Assembly: GCA_907165135.1 (NCBI GenBank)
Contig: OU015568.1
Coordinates: 14,767,208 to 14,831,207 of the forward strand
DNA from: Oikopleura dioica
Taxonomy: Eukaryota; Animalia; Chordata
Direction of reading: 5' to 3'
DNA length: 64,000 nucleotides
Shown here in pieces: positions 1,490-31,576 of the stretch; position 1 is the stretch's first letter, and the number at the start of each line of letters is the position of its first letter. The position numbers were made by a program, and so were the translations under genes. The notes under the pieces are model-generated. The model searched no databases. It was not told where the DNA came from and saw only the letters and a list, made by a program, of their open reading frames with translations.

Positions 1490-4282
1490 ATGCGAAAATG
1501 CGTGGAATATATTTTGATACTTTTTGGAGCATGTTCGATTTCGGTGGGAATCAGCATGGGTGTTTTGTACGGAGCATATGATGATGCGCTGCCAGAGAAA
1601 GTTTATGACATAATTGACGGCTTCACAACTCCTACTTCCCAACCAAGCTCTTCAACTTCTCAACCAGAAATAGAGTATTACGAAGTTGATTTTGGAGCGC
1701 TAGGAACGATCCGTGGTTACTTGAATCCAGACTATCCGGATGTTGTCGTTATGCGCGGTATCCCTTTTATGAAGCCTCCTGTCGGCGACCTCCGCTGGAA
1801 AGCCCCTGTCATCGAGCGCAGCCTTGAGGGATATCCAAGGTCGGAAATCATCGACGACGAATGGACCGGAGTTTACATTGCTGAAGAAGCTACTCCGAGC
1901 TGTCCGAATGCATTCAATGTCAATCCTTCAATAACGGAAGACTGCACGTACTTGGATATTTTCGTCCCTCGGAGAGCAATTGAGAACAAAGAAAAATTGA
2001 AAATCTTTCTTTACTTCCATGGCGGCGCGTTTTTGGGAGGCACCAACAAAGTCATTTCTCCAAATAAGGGGTCGATTATTGCTCTGGAGCAGAACATCGT
2101 CGTCATGTCAGCAAATTATCGACTTGGCGCTTTCGGGTTTTTGTTTTCCGAGTTGCTCGATGACCGAATTGACAAAGAACACGGTCTTGAGTATTACGAC
2201 GATAAAATTACTTCTGGAAATCAAGGATTAATGGACCAGCAGATGGCGATGATCTGGACTGGCGAATATTCGAAGGTAGGTTGTCATATCGGTTTTTGAT
2301 AATTCAATATTTCTAGTACTTTGGTGGCGATAAAGACGATATCACCATCGGCGGAATGAGCGCAGGCGGGCAAAGTGTACATGCTCATTTAGTTATGCCG
2401 AGCAGGTAATGACCAGCAGTAGTAAAAATTTGCGTACGCTCTTTAAATCAAACGACATATTTGCATATTCCAACTAAATCTGTCATTTCAGCGAAAAATT
2501 GTTTCATAAAGCAATCGCCTTCTCCGGACCAAATGGCATTCCGTATTATAATGATACTGAAGGTGAACAAATCCTGCAAGGAATAGCGGAATTGACGGAT
2601 TGCTGCGAAGGACCTGAGGATGTTGAAGGCATCGAAGGACTTATTCCCACCTGTGATGGGCCAACAACTCCCGAAATAATCTCCTGTATGATGGGTAAGA
2701 CAACGCTGCAGATAAACCGAGCTGCCTGGACTTTGAGCCAAGCTGCTCCAATCGGAAATTTTGAGCGATTAACGATGATTGCTGAGCCCTACGCGCCAAT
2801 TATCAACACTGGAACGCTCCAAGACATGCCGTACTTTCACTTTCAACGAGGAGAGCTTCATGACAAGCCAACCATCATCGATGTCGCAGACAATGAAGGC
2901 TACGGTTTCGTAGAACCAGTTTTCAACGGATTTTTGTGTCCAAATGAAACGTATCCATCTTCTCAAAAAGTATGCGAAGAAAACTGGGACGCATTCTTGG
3001 CTGCACTTTTGTCCCCTTCAGATTTTATAAAGATCATAAACGCTGGCTTTTATAACTGTCCTGAGGATGGCTCTGAATGTCTGCATAAAGTCGATGAATT
3101 TTTAACAGACTTTACTTGGTACTGCAATGCAAGACGTTGTCTCGAAGACGGTTACCCTACTCAAGGAGCCGGAAGAACTCGGTGAGATTTGACTCTTTAA
3201 TTATATTTATCGATTTATTAAAGATTCGGCCGAAGCGACCGTAAAACGGGCCTCTACATCGCACGTGTGAGCCAACGACTTCCATGGGACAAAATTGAAG
3301 AGGGAGTTCGACATGGAGTCGGCGAACACTGGTACTTCCACGATGCGCTTCGCAATGATCCACGATACGCTGATGATAAACCCTTCCAGTACAGCTATGT
3401 TCAATACTTGTCGAATTTTATTCGAACTGGCGATCCAAACAGTAAGACAAATTTTAAAGCGTGGCGTTATCAAAATTCTAGGGTGCGCGTCGTTTGCTAC
3501 GGTTTGGGGGGTTTGCGTATATAATATACGGTATATTTCTACGATGCGTATATTTCTACGGTGCGTATATTTCTACGGTCAAAAATGAGTCATAGGGACC
3601 GTAGCAATTGACGCACAGTTTAGGGTGGGCAAAAAGCCGGGTCGGTTTTGTCGGTTATTAATAATATTAAAAGAATTTAAAGCTATCTAAGTCGGTCGGA
3701 ACGAGTGTCTTGTCAGTTTTCCCTTACAAAAAGATAAATAAGTATCATACTTTGACAATGCTTATTGAACCAAGGCTTAAAATTATTTTCCTACATATTG
3801 TTTTCATTTTTGTAAGCGGAAACCGACCACACTATCGTTCCGACCGACTAAGATAGCTTTAAATTATTTTAATTTTATTAATAACTGACAAAACCGACCC
3901 GGCTTTTTCCCCACCCTAAACTTTGCGTCAATTGCTACGGTCCCTATGACTCATTTTTGACCGTAGAAATATACGCACCGTAGAAATATACGCATCGTAG
4001 AAATATACGCAAACCCCCCAAACCGTAGCAAACGACGCGCACCCAAAATTCTAGACTACCTTGGGAACCCTGTCGAAAATGAACACAAAGATCAGGCTGA
4101 TTGGGAAGAGTGGTCAGTCGGTAACAAGTTGCTCGATGTCGGAGCAGAAGGTAGTGACAGATAAAGATAGTAAATGGTGAAAATAAATTTCAGCAACACG
4201 TGGTTTCCAGATGCAAACATCCGATCCCCGCGAAGCTCGCTGCGATTTTATAGACTCTCTCGATCTGTACATGACTATTTAA
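1490..4282 (+). CDS. Type-B carboxylesterase / cholinesterase-fold hydrolase, copy 1 (6 exons)
   Basis: Exons ~1490-2275, 2317-2405, 2492-3181, 3224-3441, 4055-4150, 4194-4282, joined in frame by GT-AG introns. Motifs: RGIPFMKPPVGDLRW, EDCTYLDIF, FHGGAF, NYRLGAFGF, GNQGLMDQ, GGMSAGG (nucleophile), DNEG (acid), RHG (His), NFIRTGDPN. Hydrophobic N-terminal segment. Confidence 0.92.
3481..4044. mobile_element. 564-bp foldback MITE with ~220-bp inverted arms and a 9-bp TSD (Mutator/foldback-like), in an intron of esterase copy 1
   Basis: Begins GGGTGCGCGTCGTTTGCTACGG and ends CCGTAGCAAACGACGCGCACCC. AAAATTCTA is directly repeated at 3472-3480 and 4045-4053. Each arm has three ~18-bp subrepeats. 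Confidence 0.93.
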
Positions 4283-6696: not shown

Positions 6697-9600
6697 ATGA
6701 GTTGTGGCAGAATTGTCGCAGGTTTCGTTTGCCTTCTCGTCGTTGTCGCTGTTGTTATCATTACAATACTTTTTCTCGGCGATAAACCAAGAATCCAAAA
6801 GAAAATCTCTCAAATATTTTTTGATTAGAATTAGTTGTGACATAAATTGAGAACATTGAAAAGCCTTACACAAACATTTGCCAGGAAGGTTCCACTGCTC
6901 AGCAACCTGTTTACTTCTTTGTTGGTGGAGAAGAATGGAATACCACAACATATCCTGATGCAGAAGATAATACGTTCCTCATCGCGTAAGTAAATATTGT
7001 AGCCCTGAGGTCGTAGATTTTTTATAAGCTCGCCGAATCTGTTCAACGAAGAAGGAGAAGTTCTGAATGACGAAGAAATGGCCGCGGAAATGTCTGGTGA
7101 TCCAAAGATTCCCGTAAGCGACTGCTACCTCAAATTGATTCCTGAGGGTGATCAGAAGATCATTGTTGCTTCAACGAATTTTGTCTTCAATCCAAATAGC
7201 AATGAATTCACAGGAATGGGCTCAATATTATTAAATAGCATCTTCCAAATAGTTAGGCTTACCGCGGTGTTTTCTATTTTTCAGGCTCTTTTGAAAAATC
7301 TCCCCATACTTTCAGAACATATGCATCAAGACAAGCCTTGAAAAACTGCACTTGCAGAATTTTCGATATGAGTCATCTTACCCCCTTTTTTGGGGGATTT
7401 TTAGCAAGAAAAAAAGCACTAGTTTGATTAGAAGCGGCTTTTGAGTGCGTGCTAGATCGATTTTGATAATTTGATGCCTACCATGTGAAAGATAAGCGCA
7501 AGATGCATCGATACATATGAAATTTATTATTGCGGAGTACTTCCTTCATATGATTCTAGAGCTCCAAAGTTGACGCAAGCAGCCAGATACGATAATCCAA
7601 TATTATCAACTTCTGATATAAGCATGGTATGATGATGTTTTATAGCTCAAATTGAAGCTTATAAATTACTGAACAAAATGGAGTGGTATTTTTTTGACCA
7701 GCCGGTTGTGCTTCCGGTTCGTCGCGGTTCATACCCGGAAATAGGTCAAAATGTAGAAATATGTATATCAAATGAATTAATTTTCAACAGCGAATCTTTT
7801 GAACATATTCAGAAGTTCAACCGCCCGGTTATTATTGCGGTTCATGGTGGTTCATGGTGGTTCAAGCGCAGAAATGAACAAAATAGCAGCAATATGTATA
7901 TCAAATTGAAACATAAATTAAGAACATTCATAAAATCATTTAATAAGCCCGAAGCAACCGGTTGTTCTCCCGGTAAATGGCGGTTCCAAACGGTTCAAGC
8001 CGGTTCAAGCTAAAAACATGCTCAAAGTGGTTCAATATGGTTATCAAATGTATTCATTTACAATAGCGAAGCTTTCTAGCATATTAAGAAATTCAACCGC
8101 CCGGTTATTCTTGCGGTTCATGGTGGTTAATCGTGGTTCAAGCCCAGACATGAACAAAATAGCATCAATATGCATATCAAATTGAATCTTGTATTAAGTA
8201 CATTCGTCGAATCATTGAATAAGCCCAAACTACCCGTTAACTCTCGTGGAAAAAGGCGGTTTCTGACGGTTCAAGCCGGTTAAAGCCGAATATATGCTCA
8301 AAATGGTTCAATATGTATATCAAATGAAAAATTATTCAAAAGAACGTCTTTTGAAACTTTAACGAGATCCGGACGCGTGATAAAACACTGAATATGCGCA
8401 AACCGCCCGGTTTTAATCGATTTTGATCGAGGCCAGGCCCGTTTATTCAATTCAGTCTGAGACGGGGCCAAGCCGACCCGAAGGAGAGGCCAGGCCCGTT
8501 TATTCAATTCAGTCTGCGACGGGGCCAAGCCGACCCGGAGGAAAGGCCAGGCCCGTTCAAACAATTCAGTCTGAGACGGGGCCAAGCCGACCCGAAGAGG
8601 TGGCCAGGCCCGTTTATACATTCAGTCTGAGACGGGGCAAAGCCGACCCGAATGGGAGGCCAGGCCCGTTCAAACAATTCAGTCTGAGACGGGGCCAAGC
8701 CGACCCGAAGGGAGGCCAGGCCCGTTTATTCAATTCAGTCTGAGACGGGGCCAAGCCGACCCGAAGGGGAGGCCAGGCCCGTTTATGCAATTCAGTCTGA
8801 GACGGGGCAAAGCCAACCCGAAGGGAAGGCCAGGCGCGTTCATACAATTCAGTCTGCGACGAGGCCAAGCCGACCCGAAGGGGAGGCCAGGCCCGTTTAA
8901 ACAATTCAGTCTGCGACGGGGCCAAGCCGACCCGAAGGGGAGGCCAGGCCCGTTTATACCATTCAATCTGCGACGGGGCCAAGCCGACCCGAAGAGGAGG
9001 CCAGGCCCGTTGAAACGATTCAGTCTGCGACGAGCCGAAGCCGACCCGAAGGAAAGACCAGGCCCGTTTATTTAATTCAGTTTGCGACGGGGCCAAGCCG
9101 ACCCGAAGAGGAGGCAAGGCCCGTTTATTCAATTCAGTCTGCCACGGATGAATTGTATGATCGCGCCTGGCCTCCCCTTCGGGTCGGCTTGGTTCCGTCG
9201 CAGACTGAATTGAATAAACGGGCCTGGTCTCCCCTTCGGGTCGGCTTGGCCCCGTCTCAGACTGAATTGAATAAACGGGCTTTGCCTCCCCTTCGGGTCG
9301 GCTTGGCCCCGTCTCAGACTGAATTGTTTGAACGGGCCTGGCCTCCCCTTCGGGTCGGCTTGGCCCCGTCTCAGACTGAATTGTTTAAACGGGCCTGGCC
9401 TCCCTTCGGGTCGGCTTGGCCTCGTCGCAGACTGAATTGTATGAACGCGCCTGGCCTTCCCTTCGGCTTGGCTTTGCCCCGTCTCAGACTGAATGTATAA
9501 ACGCGCCTGGCCTCCCTTCGGGTCGGCTTGGCCCCGTCTCAGACTGAATTCTTTGAACGAGCCTGGCCTCCCCTTCGGGTCGGCTTGGCCCCGTCTCAGA

Positions 9601-11125
9601 CTGAATTGAATAAACGGGCCTTGCCTCCCCTTCGGGTCGGCTTGGCCCCGTCTCAGACTGAATTGAATAATTGGGCCTGGCCTCCCCTTATTTTCGCCCG
9701 TTTAAAGAGACAAAATCGATTAAAACCGGGCGGTTTGCGCATATTCAGTGTTTTATCACGCGTCCGGATCTCGTTAAAGTTTCAAAAGACGTGCTTTTGA
9801 ATAATTCTTCATTTGATATACATATTGAACCATTTTGAGCATATATTCGGCTTTAACCGGCTTGAACCGTCAGAAACCGCCTTTTTCCACGAGAGTTACC
9901 GGGTGGTTTGGGCTTATTCAATGATTCGACGAATGTACTTAATACAAGATTCAATTTGATATGCATATTGATGCTATTTTGTTCATGTCTGGGCTTGAAC
10001 CACGATTAACCACCATGAACCGCAAGAATAACCGGGCGGTTGAATTTCTTAATATGCTAGAAAGCTTCGCTATTGTAAATGAATACATTTGATAACCATA
10101 TTGAACCACTTTGAGCATGTTTTTAGCTTGAACCGGCTTGAACCGTTTGGAACCGCCATTTACCGGGAGAACAACCGGTTGCTTCGGGCTTATTAAATGA
10201 TTTTATGAATGTTCTTAATTTATGTTTCAATTTGATATACATATTGCTGCTATTTTGTTCATTTCTGCGCTTGAACCACCATGAACCACCATGAACCGCA
10301 ATAATAACCGGGCGGTTGAACTTCTGAATATGTTCAAAAGATTCGCTGTTGAAAATTAATTCATTTGATATACATATTTCTACATTTTGACCTATTTCCG
10401 GGTATGAACCGCGACGAACCGGAAGCACAACCGGCTGGTCAAAAAAATACCACTCCATTTTGTTCAGTAATTTATAAGCTTCAATTTGAGCTATAAAACA
10501 TCATCATACCATGCTTATATCAGAAGTTGATAATATTGGATTATCGTATCTGGCTGCTTGCGTCAACTTTGGAGCTCTAGAATCATATGAAGGAAGTACT
10601 CCGCAATAATAAATTTCATATGTATCGATGCATCTTGCGCTTATCTTTCACATGGTAGGCATCAAATTATCAAAATCGATCTAGCACGCACTCAAAAGCC
10701 GCTTCTAATCAAACTAGTGCTTTTTTTCTTGCTAAAAATCCCCCAAAAAAGGGGGTAAGATGACTCATATCGAAAATTCTGCAAGTGCAGTTTTTCAAGG
10801 CTTGTCTTGATGCATATGTTCTGAAAGTATGGGGAGATTTTTCAAAAGAGCCTGAAAAATCGAAAAACACCGCGGTAAGCCTACAAATAGTACAACAAAA
10901 AACCCTAAATAAGATCTAACCACTGATATGACCTCCTGTGGAAATCAATATTTGGCGATCAATGGCAACGAAAAATGCGGCGGAATAAATATGGAGGATC
11001 CGGATTTTTCCATGACCGATTTCGCAAACGTTGAGCTTGGTGACGCTGGCGAACCGGTTCTTTTGCATCTTAAAAATGACAGCCCTTCTGATGGATATTT
11101 CATTTTCATGTTCACAACCGAATAA
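6697..11125 (+). CDS. Membrane-anchored (type II) or secreted protein with a divergent CUB-like domain; last intron contains the 3.6-kb palindrome
   Basis: N-terminal TM segment GRIVAGFVCLLVVVAVVIITILFL. Exons near 6850-6986, 7029-~7213 and 10914-11125 read IASPNLF..DCYLKLIPEGDQKIIV..NFVF..CGNQYLAINGNEKCG..LLHLKNDSPSDGYFIFMF, resembling the CUB pattern (ISPNYP..CxWxI..F.L..CxxDYLxI..CG..LxFxSD..GF). The first splice junction is uncertain. Confidence 0.6.
8431..9141 (+). repeat. 57-bp GC-rich tandem repeat, ~12.5 copies (left half of the palindrome core)
   Basis: Unit GGCCAGGCCCGTTTATTCAATTCAGTCTGAGACGGGGCCAAGCCGACCCGAAGG(G/A)GA, read directly from the sequence. Confidence 0.95.
9153..9690 (-). 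repeat. Same 57-bp repeat in inverted orientation, ~9.5 copies (right half of the palindrome core)
   Basis: Unit CAGACTGAATTGAATAAACGGGCCTGGCCTCCCCTTCGGGTCGGCTTGGCCCCGTCT; orientation flips at ~9142-9152. Confidence 0.95.
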
Positions 11126-11207: not shown

Positions 11208-13638
11208 TTACACTATAATTGTCACAGAAAAAGCCTTAGGAAGTAGATACCATTCGTTCTTTTTTTGATCAGTTTCATAGGAAAAAGTCGGTCTGTTTGT
11301 GGGGATCTGAATCGTTTCACTCCAGTTCTTGAGAACGTACTCATTGTTTTCGATACTGTCAAGAACCATTTGATGAAATCTGGTGGCGCCTGATTCTGGT
11401 GAAGATGCAGCAGTTACAGTTAGAGGTCGAGTAAATAGAAAAGATGAGTCAAAGACAACTGAAAAAAATTTGAATGGGTTTTTGTTATAATTAAAATTTA
11501 CCTCTTTCGAACGAAAATTTTGACTTTGGAAGTTTAAGACAGCTCCTGAGGATTTCCCACCCACTAGCATTCACGTACGTTGGATATTTGAGTCTTCTGA
11601 GAAATTTTTCTATTTCTCTTTCTTGACTGTCAGGGTGGAGATTGAATCGAGCCAAACTTCGGGGGTAAATAATCATCGTCAGAATGGAAAATACTTTGAA
11701 GAAGATGGAATCATCAGTTTTATATTCAAGGTCGTTTTTGAGAGCATCACAGATTAAGGTTGCGACGGAAATTGGCACACAAAGATGTCCATTAGGATGA
11801 TCAAGATGACTTCTGAAGATACTCTCTTTCATGACTGACATTTCTCGCAACTTTGTCAATTTCGGGTCATCGAAGTATGCTTCACCCGAGGTAGAAATAC
11901 AGGCGATTCCAGTAGCTTCCTGCAACTTTGCCTTGAACGGAAATGTTTTTGTATGATTGATAATACCGCAGCCTTTTCCCTCTTTGTCGAATTTTACCAA
12001 GTTACATTCCTAAATAAATCAGCAATCAATTCAGCACAGTATTTCAACCTCTAAAATCTCGTCGAGCAGAGCCTTCTCATCTTCGTCAATAGGATCAAAT
12101 AAAAGACTCCAGGCAGTTTTCCATTCACAAAAGATAAAACGGATGATGTTGTCGACCGAGTAACCTTGGTTGCCAATGATTTGCATCGAGTCGGAAAAGC
12201 CAGGAGTTCCAGAATCTAAAGAGGTTCATATGAAAACCCAGGACTTTCTGCTAAAATTGACTTACATAGTGATTGAGCCAGTCTAAACTTCGATCCTCGT
12301 CGTGCGTATCCCATTTTTCTATAACTCAATCGATTGGTTTTGTCGGATATGATTCCAAAATCGGCGATCTTGGCAACTTTTCCGATCAACAGAACATTTT
12401 CTAGTTTCAAGTCGTAGTGGGAAATCCCCACTGCGCCGAGATATTCGACAGCTCGTTTTATTCCGATCGCAATATTTTTTCTTTCTTCAAGATCTATCGT
12501 TCCCAATTCTCTTCTGTTCGAAGGCTACCGTCAGCTTTCTCCATGACAGTCAGCCATCCCAAACAGTCGGATAAATCAGTATCATCTGGGTCGTAAAACT
12601 CAATGTTCGCAAAGTGCTGGATTATGTTTTCGTGAAACGGAATGTATCTACTGTACTCTCTCCCTCTCGACATGAAAATGTCGGTCTTGATTTTTGTTGC
12701 TTGCTTGTAATCTCCTATAATAAAGAATTATCGAAGTATTTCTACCAAAATTCGGACAAAATCAATTCATGGAAGTGCATTTTTGGATTACCAATAAGAT
12801 TGCTGTATTTGGCCTACCGGCCAATCAAAACCCGGATCTTTAAAATCACTTCCATAAATTGGTTTAACCCTAAAATTCCTACCTGAAGAAAAGTTGAAGA
12901 CAAGCTTGACTTCGCCCAAAAAATGATCAGTGAAAAGCGCAGAGTCAAATGCCTGAATTCTCACAGCAAAAGGGCGTTGATTAAAGAATTTCTCGAAGAC
13001 GATTGCTTCCCCTCCTTCCTGGACACATTCAGAGCCCAGCAAAGTCAAGTCCCATTTTCCTTCTTCTTCCTTGATTTCATCTCGATATATTTCTTTGCCA
13101 AGCAAGTGAATGTGTTCTTGGAGTAATTTCTGCTGAAAAACTGTCGATTTCCATTTGTGTGGATTTTCTGGAAGAGGAATGCCATTTGCGAAGAGTTGAC
13201 AAGTATTTTCATCGTGGAAGATGAAACTGGTGAATTTTCTCGCTGTACTGTCTCTTTCAAACTCGTGTCTTTCCATGGATAGAATCAGACGGCACTTGGC
13301 AGTTCTCGTTGTTGTTCTCTTGAGCAGAGGAATTAGATCTTCGGCCCAATATCTGACATCATATCCAGGTAGTCCCGCAGGATAGTGATTTCTCAGCAGA
13401 GTTCTAAATTTGGTTAGCTAGCAGCTCAGCTATTTTTCAAGTAATTTACTTGAAGCTTTAAGCTCTCGTCAAATCTTCAAAATTTAGAACTCTGTCCCTC
13501 AGGGATTCACATTTTTTCTGGTCAACCCCGTTCATCAGTAAAAAGGCTGTAAAACTGCTGAAATTTCGACTTCAAAAAAGCTCAAATTTTCTTATTTGCT
13601 GATGCCAAATAGCGGTTTACTTCTGGCCTACTAGTCAT
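11208..13638 (-). pseudogene. Atypical protein kinase fused to a putative papain-like peptidase domain, paralogue A; apparent frameshift and premature stop
   Basis: Spliced exons give EGGEAIV, FAVRIQ, HENIIQHF, WLTVMEKADGSL, SHYDLKLENVLL, KIADFG, GTPGF, then HLCVPISV and RPLTVT..FHQMVLD..YVLKNWS. A 1-nt frameshift lies at ~12508, and an in-frame TAA at 13458-13460 in an inferred 5' exon. The start at 13638 is tentative. Confidence 0.8.
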
Positions 13639-29393: not shown

Positions 29394-31576
29394 TTATCTT
29401 TGGATATGTATATGCTTCTTTTCACGAACAAAAAAGATTGAATATGCTTGTGGCAAGAGATACCATTTTTCTGTTTTCATGTTGAATTGTTCATTTGTCA
29501 ATTCTAAAAACTCATTATTTGGTCCATAGTAGACGAAATCCTTGTAGCAGTTGTAACAATCTTTCATCATTTCTTCAGAAGCGTAGTACTTGTGAGAAAC
29601 AGGAATTCTAATTTGAGAGCCGGAATGGTCAATGAGAGTGTTTTGAAGAATGAAGTCGGAATTTTCGAGTCGGTCCAGGACCATCTGATGGAAAAATATT
29701 GAGCCGTCGGGATTTAGGTAGGCGCCGGTGACGGTTAGGGGACGGGAAAAGGCGAAGTTGGAATGAAGAAGAACTACAAATACTAGGGTATAATAAAATT
29801 TATCATTGATAGATTATAACTTTGGCTTTTTTTTACCTTTCTCAAAATCGAAGTTTCTATTTGTACTGCTGGCATATGTGAGTATCTCCCATCCACTTTC
29901 ATTCAAATATGTTCTGAATTTCATTCTTTTGAGAAGAAATTCAATTTCATTTTTTTGAAATTCTTGTTCTTCTTTTTTCGGGTTGAGATTGAAGCCAGCC
30001 AAACTGCGCGGATAAATAATCATCGTCAGTTGAGTGAAGATGTATTCGAGAGTTAAACTTTGCAGCATACCCCATCCTCTCCAATCATTTTTGAGTGCCC
30101 ATCTCAAAAGAACTGAAACTGAAATTGGAACACAAAGATCGCTTTCTTTTTGGTTTAAAACATTCTTCGTCACATTTTCGAAGTCGAAATTGATCTGTCT
30201 GGTCAGTTTCTGTTTGAGATTTGCCATTGCTAAAGACTTCGTCAAGTTCGGATCGTCCAAAGAAAAATCAGAAGCCGCGTTTTTTAGAGAAATTATTTTT
30301 GATAATTTTTTGATTTCTTCGGTCGAAGGAGTTTTGTTTGATAGCCACGCAGCACGACCTGCCTAAAAATATTTCTTCATTCGCAGAAAACAAGCTCTTA
30401 CTTTTAGTTTTTTCTCTGATTCTCTCCCTTTCGTCTTTTTCTAGTGGCTTGAAAAGAAGACTCCACGCTGTATTCCAGTCACACAAAATAAAAACGTGTA
30501 GTGGTGATTCAGATCTTCGGAACTCCCCATAAAGTTGATATTCTTTCGAAAAAGCAGCAGATCCAGCATCTAAGAAAAATTAAAATCAAGAACAAATTTT
30601 CTTCATAAACTAACGCAAATACGCTATTGTTCTAAATTTGCTCCCTCTCCTCGCGTAGCCCATTCTTCTGTAGCTTTTTCTTCCAGTTATTTCCCAAATT
30701 GTCCCGAAATCTATCCATTTGCATTCTCTATTTTTTAATAAAATATTCTCCGGTTTCCGATCCTCATGAGAAATTCCAATTTTTCTCAAATACTCTCTCC
30801 CTTCTTCAACTTCAATCGCTATTCTCTTTCTTTCTTCTAAACTCAAATCTTCGTTTTTCAATCTGCTTCTCAAATCTGAGTCGCACTTCTCCATAATCGT
30901 TATCCATCCAAGGCAGTCCTCTCTCTTCTCGTCCTTGATTGAGAAAATTTCGATGTTGCAGAAATTTTTGATCACGTTTGGATGAAGAGGAATTACTTGA
31001 GCGTTGTTTTTTTATTTTGTCCTGAGCCATTTTGAAATCTTAATTGAAAATTTAGAATTTCTAGCAAAAATTTCAATAACCTTCAGAAAGATTAATCTCA
31101 AACTCCAACTCCTTATCCTCTCCCGTAAACAGGGCTGAGTCAAAAGCCTGAACCCGAACCGCAACTTCCAATTCTCCAAAATTTCCTCCCAAAACAATCG
31201 CCTCTCCTCCAGAAGAAATCAATTTTGATTGAAAAAAATCATCAAAAATCCATTCTCCTGTTTCTTCTTTTAGTTCCGAACGTTCAATTTTTCGTCCTTC
31301 TACGAAAGGATTTTTGTCGATGATCATTTTCTGAAATGACGTTATCGCATATTCTTCCAAGTATTTTCCAACAGAGAGTTTTCCTTTTCCATTTTCAAAA
31401 ATAACCGCCTCCCACTCAGCATGAGAATGATATTCAAAATCGCTTCTCTCCACGGACAAAATCAATCTGTCCAAATCGTCTCTACTCGTCGTTCTCTTCA
31501 ACTTCTTTTTAAAATCTTCTAACCATTTCTCAACAGCTTCTCTTGTCAACTCTTTTGGGTGCGTCGTTACTCTCAT
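29394..31576 (-). CDS. Atypical protein kinase fused to a putative papain-like peptidase domain, paralogue B; one apparent frameshift in an A7 run
   Basis: SGGEAIV, VAVRVQAFDSALFT, IPLHPNVIKNF, WITIMEKCDSDL, SHEDRKPENILL, WIDFG, SYRRMGYARRGSKFR, then QKESDLCVPISV, RPLTVTG..FHQMVLD..FILQNT and WYLLPQAY. Colinear with paralogue A, with shared intron positions. The frame breaks at ~31007-31013. Confidence 0.82.

Follow-up and report, generated by a model that had tools for sequence, protein, structure and literature searches.

Two minus-strand paralogues, lying 18 kb apart in the 64,000-nt stretch of Oikopleura dioica DNA analysed here (the window), quite probably belong to an expanded protein family. 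In its modelled architecture, a conserved N-terminal region of ~140 aa, an atypical kinase and a conserved flexible linker precede a C-terminal papain-like peptidase domain of clan CA (~225 aa) with a Gln/Cys/His/Asn active site. The paralogues are referred to as copy A (11208-13417) and copy B (29394-31576). The fusion of kinase and peptidase in one reading frame is real: on the Tara Oceans metagenome contig L001, a single 449-aa ORF extends without a break from the kinase DFG up to where the peptidase domain ends, and many independent full-length O. dioica gene models join both parts. Both folds are already known, but the peptidase domain forms a sequence family that is matched by no Pfam model or solved structure. 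The initial annotation, which had read copy A and its paralogue as a papain-type cysteine peptidase fused to a kinase, is supported by the fold, by residue conservation and by the single-frame fusion. However, copy A itself is degenerate, with a frameshift and a Gln-to-His replacement, and the importance of the finding at its coordinates is correspondingly lower.

The family is so far confined to Oikopleura dioica and marine metagenome contigs. An HMMER profile of the two Cys-bearing exons, run against 1.84 billion representative proteins, retrieved no more than 67, every one of this kind, while word-indexed searches returned 67 relatives at first and later 276 clusters (90% identity). All named relatives are from O. 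dioica and are called either 'unnamed protein product' or 'Protein kinase domain-containing protein', the remainder being marine metagenome contigs. No kinase-peptidase fusion was found outside these two sources among 1.8 billion representative proteins or in the AlphaFold DB clusters. When the full-length model was compared with the latter using Foldseek, proteins spanning both domains were retrieved only among O. dioica-type entries (accessions beginning E4), and other matches covered the kinase part only or had a TM of ~0.2. The architecture had been described as unfamiliar from characterised animal families, and these searches agree. Full-text literature searching found no paper on this kinase-papain family. 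A viral fold library contained no convincing relative, leaving a viral origin without support, and an ESM Atlas feature search with the Cys exon gave low scores to unrelated short bacterial clusters only. Family proteins are ~650-700 aa long, with full-length members of up to 720 aa (690-720). An N-terminal hydrophobic segment is absent in most members and in copy B, from which most of the family would appear to lack a signal peptide. This agrees, for the majority, with the proposed absence of such a peptide. Members of one subclade (P0075, P0079, P0087, P0092, P0095 and P0114) start with a hydrophobic stretch of 20 residues.

The fold of the peptidase domain was assessed by modelling the last 303 aa of relative P0087 with AlphaFold2, using a 47-row alignment that included the window exons. 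Mean pLDDT was 76.8, and the core residues 79-303 were mostly above 90. The model has the two-lobed clan CA layout, with the Cys at a helix N-terminus (Cys81 opens helix 81-96), the His on a beta-barrel strand (His214, within strand 211-222) and the Asn after strand 225-229. Foldseek searches against the PDB gave weak E-values; the top named matches were mostly papain-like, including PCAT1 and ComA (C39), Josephin-like clippase, AvrPphB, staphopain and AvrRpt2. In both VIA-align searches, which are independent of Foldseek, each of the 50 best structural matches was a papain-like cysteine peptidase; in the search of 48,161 representative chains these included xylellain, Der f 1, cathepsin B, PCAT1, PeiR, ComA, caricain, staphopain, IdeS, UfSP2, ATG4A and ZUFSP. 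Structure prediction followed by a fold search had been set beforehand as the test of the papain-like reading, and its outcome is in line with that reading. Shape neighbours in the ESM Atlas carried Peptidase_C39_2 or Peptidase_C1, and matches in AlphaFold DB also bore the name Peptidase C58 YopT-type. The public databases already hold a hint of the fold, since a family fragment among the AlphaFold DB clusters (E4XPZ6) carries the automatic UniProt name 'Peptidase C39-like domain-containing protein', which our own Pfam scan did not reproduce. In the structural alignments, model residue 76 corresponds to papain-type residue 20, PCAT1 residue 16 and ComA residue 12. This offset would place model Gln75 and Cys81 on the oxyanion Gln and the catalytic Cys of the known enzymes, which we take to be Gln19 and Cys25 in papain, Cys21 in PCAT1 and Cys17 in ComA. 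The initial annotation had also likened VPISV, next to the Cys, to the PVSV strand of papain. This likeness is coincidental: the catalytic helix of the model begins at VPISV, and PVSV of papain is a beta-strand elsewhere in its sequence.

At the sequence level, the C-terminal ~230 aa had no match in Pfam or among PDB sequences, whether searched as exon pieces or as a 47-sequence profile. Pfam PF00112 (Peptidase_C1) did not match the window pieces or the 47 family members at E <=1, and the profile had no PDB sequence match; neither of the C39 models (PF03412 and PF13529) matched any family member at E <=1. As the sequence-profile test failed for both C1 and C39, the domain is best placed in a separate clan CA family rather than in either of these. 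Compared with the papain family (MEROPS C1; papain, ervatamin, cathepsins B and S and Der p 1), there is no detectable sequence kinship, and identity in structural alignments is 8-17%. In addition, the Oikopleura domain sits behind a kinase, most members have no signal peptide and an I29-type propeptide was not found. Its helical lobe is much larger than that of the 130-aa C39 domains of PCAT1 and ComA. Unlike the C39 ABC exporters, the host is eukaryotic, the partner is a kinase instead of an ABC transporter and there is no known double-glycine substrate.

A Gln six residues before the Cys, together with a His and an Asn, is the peptidase-type arrangement of C1 and C39. In a regular-expression census of the family, the Cys was present in 95 of 98 sequences (the other three had Ser), the Gln at -6 in 94/98, the His in 52/52 and the Asn in 46/52. 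The alignment-based census gave similar proportions (Cys 45/47, Gln 45/48, His 37/40 and Asn 32/39), so that conservation of the four residues across family members is borne out in both. Kept in this way across the family, the pattern is not a product of chance. A few members have Ser for Cys or no Asn. All four residues occur in copy B in the catalytic order Gln-Cys-His-Asn, with the Gln six residues N-terminal of the Cys (QKESDLCVPISV), while copy A has a His in the place of the Gln. The set proposed initially is therefore retained in copy B and in the family, but not in full in copy A. Computed coordinates put the motifs where they had been reported, both for the copy A Cys and for the copy B Gln, and confirm the 16-residue distance from His to Asn in each copy. 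The spacing is 16-22 among relatives, a variation expected for a hairpin loop.

The kinase domain was recognized by Pfam Pkinase (PF00069) with 37.2 bits in copy A and 40.5 bits in copy B (gathering cutoff 31.7), over the central third of the profile only; relatives scored 34.6-44.8 bits. Among solved kinases, DAPK1 is the nearest in sequence (E 5e-7 over 90 residues), and ordinary kinases (IRE1, GSK3, DAPK and MAPKs) were retrieved by Foldseek with the full-length model. The family glycine loop reads GGEAx(V/I). In a 62-row alignment, Arg replaces the beta3 (VAIK) Lys in 39 of 40 sequences, the two window copies among them, while all of 43 sequences retain the HxD Asp, the Lys and Asn of the catalytic loop and the DFG Asp; both copies have the catalytic-loop and DFG residues. 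Mammalian KSR likewise has Arg in place of the beta3 Lys. The likeness to KSR lies in that Arg, with no kinship beyond the kinase fold, and the invariant HxD Asp, catalytic-loop Lys and Asn and DFG set the family apart from KSR-type pseudokinases. The beta3 Lys that pairs with an alpha-C Glu in eukaryotic protein kinases is thus not retained, and the alpha-C helix is almost absent in the full-length model. As modelled, the Lys-to-Arg replacement and the near-absent alpha-C helix argue against normal kinase activity. The full-length two-domain model has a pLDDT of 82.8; its pTM is high (0.82), suggesting joint packing of the kinase and peptidase domains as a single unit. Linker residues 441-473, just before the active-site Gln, are conserved in sequence (DDPNLTKS onward) and have low model confidence.

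For copy A, the likeliest explanation is recent pseudogenization or mis-assembly. Its exons are as follows.

12883-13417, minus strand: exon 1, conserved N-terminal region, GGEA glycine loop and beta3 strand with Arg (12959-12961) for Lys; tblastn match to P0087 residues 39-186
12266-12714, minus strand: exon 2, kinase core with the HYD Asp (12411-12413) and the DFG Asp (12360-12362), a one-base frameshift between 12494 and 12524, and the Pfam Pkinase match
12049-12215, minus strand: exon 3, end of the kinase C-lobe with the CEWKTAW motif
11502-12009, minus strand: exon 4, linker and helical half of the papain-like domain, with His 11797-11799 (Gln in relatives) and Cys 11779-11781
11208-11458, minus strand: exon 5, beta-barrel half of the papain-like domain, with His 11373-11375, Asn 11325-11327 and the stop codon 11208-11210

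The Cys codon of copy A is TGT, within LCVPISV; its His lies in FHQMVLD and its Asn in YVLKN. When spliced at the homologous sites, copy A yields 1910 coding nt, or 2 mod 3. Its 5' frame reaches a stop at 12494-12496, and the 3' frame is open only from 12524, for 394 codons to the stop at 11208-11210; these observations together indicate a frameshift inside the kinase domain. The change of frame occurs within exon 2 without an intron, and the homologous stretch measures 56 nt in copy A and 57 nt in copy B (counted by eye). A 35-nt GT-AG mini-intron in the 12491-12525 region could in theory restore the frame. This was judged unlikely, as it would be shorter than the 39-168 nt introns of the two copies and would delete ~12 residues that align with relatives. 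At its 5' end, the frame is open from 13417, with a sole in-frame ATG at 13276 that falls inside the conserved N-terminal region. Homology to relatives begins at ~13384, upstream of that ATG, and the conserved N-terminus thus has no start codon. The gene had been extended to 13638, which the sequence does not bear out: the ATG there heads an 18-codon ORF without a shown link to the gene. Copy A also lacks ~30 residues of the beta-barrel half that copy B and most relatives possess. The public gene call covers only 11882-13276 (254 aa). Four RNA runs (three poly-A and one single-cell) gave zero reads on copy A, a result that carries no weight for or against its frameshift or splicing. The decay appears recent, because the 394-codon frame is still open downstream of the break.

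Copy B can be read, on the splice model below, as five exons of 648 codons with no internal stop, separated by four GT-AG introns of 85, 45, 43 and 63 nt.

31081-31576, minus strand: exon 1, from the ATG at 31576, with the N-terminal region, the glycine loop and the beta3 strand with Arg 31154-31156
30996-31080, minus strand: intron 1, 85-nt GT-AG, in which a segment that copy A and relatives have as coding sequence survives as a frame-shifted relic (DFKMAQDKIKK)
30615-30995, minus strand: exon 2, kinase core with the HED Asp (30760-30762) and the DFG Asp (30709-30711); Pfam Pkinase E 2.7e-10
30402-30569, minus strand: exon 3, end of the kinase C-lobe with the CDWNTAW motif
29837-30358, minus strand: exon 4, linker (DDPNLTKS) and helical half of the papain-like domain, with Gln 30150-30152 and Cys 30132-30134
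29394-29773, minus strand: exon 5, beta-barrel half of the papain-like domain, with His 29688-29690, Asn 29640-29642 and the stop codon

Because intron 1 holds the relic of a segment that is coding in relatives, copy B would encode the full 648-aa protein only under this predicted splice model, in which the downstream acceptor (30996) is used. The intron positions are common to both copies, whose introns span 39-168 nt. The C-terminal pieces of the two copies are 30-40% identical by tblastn and 41-43% in pairwise alignments, and paralogues of the family are otherwise 30-60% identical. No third copy was found in the 64,000-nt window by tblastn. The window DNA agrees without mismatch over 16,565 nt with record OU015568.1 (GCA_907165135.1) at ~14.77 Mb, and a neighbouring carboxylesterase in the window is 100% identical to OKI2018_I69.PAR.g12638. 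No protein encoded by this window and no OKI2018-named protein occurs among the family matches listed (67 relatives; best 120 of the 276 clusters). With this absence and the 254-aa model of copy A, the Okinawa genome annotation seems to miss or truncate these genes.

Both copies could be pseudogenes of a real family, leaving the locus dead. The frameshift, the loss of the Gln, the missing start codon, the ~30-aa deletion and the 254-aa public model of copy A all point that way, as do the coding relic in intron 1 of copy B and the absence of window-encoded or OKI2018-named proteins among the family matches listed (67 relatives; best 120 of the 276 clusters). Nevertheless, a dead locus is unlikely overall: the 648-codon frame of copy B is complete, its four GT-AG introns are canonical and typical in size, none of the catalytic-type residues is missing from it, and even copy A keeps a 394-codon frame open downstream of its break. 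Far less probable, to the point of being nearly negligible, is that the motifs resemble a peptidase by chance or that two adjacent genes were wrongly merged to give the apparent fusion. In favour of such a reading, the C-terminal part has no Pfam or PDB sequence match, but the structural matches are unanimously papain-like, L001 spans both domains in a single ORF, and the many independent full-length O. dioica models and the pTM of 0.82 also speak for a genuine fusion.

If the family is genuine, the chemistry of the domain could still differ from that of a general endopeptidase. It may act on ubiquitin or ubiquitin-like conjugates, which would make the protein a deubiquitinase or UBL protease linked to a kinase. 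Isopeptidases are numerous among cytosolic clan CA enzymes, most members here lack an N-terminal hydrophobic segment, read as the absence of a signal peptide, and the structural neighbours include UfSP2, ATG4A, ZUFSP/Mug105, Josephin-like clippase and viral tegument-like DUBs. However, the best structural matches are C1 papains and C39 peptidases rather than DUB families, and we consider this specialization a minority prospect. It is improbable that the papain fold here serves a reaction other than proteolysis (acyltransferase, transglutaminase, amidase or phytochelatin-synthase-like) or that the domain is an inactive scaffold. Phytochelatin synthase, the C39-like domain of a Vibrio parahaemolyticus toxin secretion ATP-binding protein and a 'CD lyase' share the fold and were among the matches, although a shared fold does not show function. 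Against this, Gln(-6)/Cys/His/Asn is the arrangement of C1 and C39 peptidases, and the near-invariance of all four residues speaks against a scaffold. We therefore retain the reading of the domain as a thiol hydrolase, either peptidase or isopeptidase. It seems fairly likely to be a working one, given that the four catalytic-type residues survive in dozens of diverged paralogues.

Two known systems offer analogies for how such a hydrolase might be linked to a kinase. In IRE1 and RNase L, a kinase-fold domain is followed by a hydrolytic effector in one polypeptide, which makes them the closest analogy of design, with no claim of membership. IRE1 was the first Foldseek PDB match of the full-length model, but the rmsd exceeded 20 A over the long alignment, and hence only the kinase part is shared. 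The Oikopleura effector differs in being papain-like and in lacking a KEN ribonuclease domain. AvrPphB and YopT (C58) share the papain-like fold, AvrPphB being among the Foldseek matches, and AvrPphB cleaves the kinase PBS1, a precedent for the functional pairing of protease and kinase. In contrast to the family, these are bacterial secreted effectors that act in trans on a host kinase, and they have no sequence similarity to it. It would be pure speculation, drawn from this analogy, that the Oikopleura peptidase domain might cleave its own fused kinase.

The kinase-like domain could possibly bind nucleotide and serve as a regulator or as a dock for substrates instead of working as a standard kinase, a tentative reading suggested by the Lys-to-Arg replacement alongside an intact catalytic loop. 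Conjecturally, it would pack against the peptidase and regulate it by binding nucleotide or by scaffolding, gating it in a manner that resembles the control of the fused hydrolase in IRE1 and RNase L. Again speculatively, a pro-region or a self-cleavage site may be what the conserved linker, lying just ahead of the active site, provides. A role in defence or conflict is a speculative suggestion from the expansion, the divergence and the broken copies of the family. On a broader and rather doubtful view, built on analogy, the protein would be a gated protease invented in the chordate lineage, in which a nucleotide-binding pseudokinase senses a signal such as a ligand, phosphorylation or oligomerisation and switches on the fused protease, much as a nuclease is switched on in RNase L or IRE1, and its hundreds of fast-diverging copies would be innate-immune or genetic-conflict effectors in appendicularians. 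The O. dioica genome is otherwise known for its compaction, and a large share of the usual immune genes is said to be missing from this animal. Should the peptidase prove active and under control of the kinase-like domain, the family would represent a new way to couple a kinase-fold switch to proteolysis, and it would in that case also be a candidate lineage-specific defence or signalling system.

The first intron of copy B, one of the two kinase–peptidase paralogues in the window, holds a frame-shifted remnant, DFKMAQDKIKK, whose counterpart belongs to the coding sequence of copy A (DYKQATKIK) and of relatives:

30996-31080, minus strand: copy B intron 1, with the remnant DFKMAQDKIKK

An A-rich run adjoins the remnant. 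There are two possible readings: splicing to an acceptor site downstream now skips an old frameshift, or this copy, like copy A, is broken.

Members of the family were also found in marine metagenomes, among them a divergent one on a Tara Oceans contig (L001, run ERR1726645):

L001:155-1504: single intron-free ORF of 449 aa

This ORF extends from the kinase DFG to the end of the peptidase; the active-site Cys and His are kept, and Met occupies the expected Asn position. A second marine metagenome contig (L002:14-1231) shares 76% DNA identity with copy B (window 29827-31051), in exons and introns alike, which suggests a close paralogue or the presence in the seawater sample of a related lineage of appendicularians. 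Within the family, six relatives (P0075, P0079, P0087, P0092, P0095 and P0114) form one subclade, in which the N-terminus is a 20-residue hydrophobic segment (Kyte-Doolittle ~2.0). This segment looks like a signal anchor; it is absent in other family members and in copy B.

Other features of the window are as follows:

1556-4282, plus strand: carboxylesterase gene 1 (Pfam COesterase), called as 633 aa
4384-6565, plus strand: carboxylesterase gene 2 (Pfam COesterase), called as 671 aa
59819-60292, plus strand: ORF with a weak BTG-family match (E 1.4e-4, just under the Pfam cutoff)

The two carboxylesterase genes are arranged in tandem. Gene 2 is 100% identical to OKI2018_I69.PAR.g12638 across a 403-aa query ORF and additionally has a weak Mucin-type match. 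Positions 8001-10000 have a G+C content of 52%, compared with ~38% in the surrounding DNA.

A public gene call overlies copy A:

11882-13276, minus strand: gene call of GCA_907165135.1, only 254 aa

Since this model ends within the Cys-bearing exon, in a different frame, the annotated protein lacks the peptidase domain. None of the family matches listed (67 relatives, then the best 120 of 276 clusters) was a protein encoded in the window or carrying an OKI2018 name, and the Okinawa annotation may therefore under-call the kinase–peptidase family.
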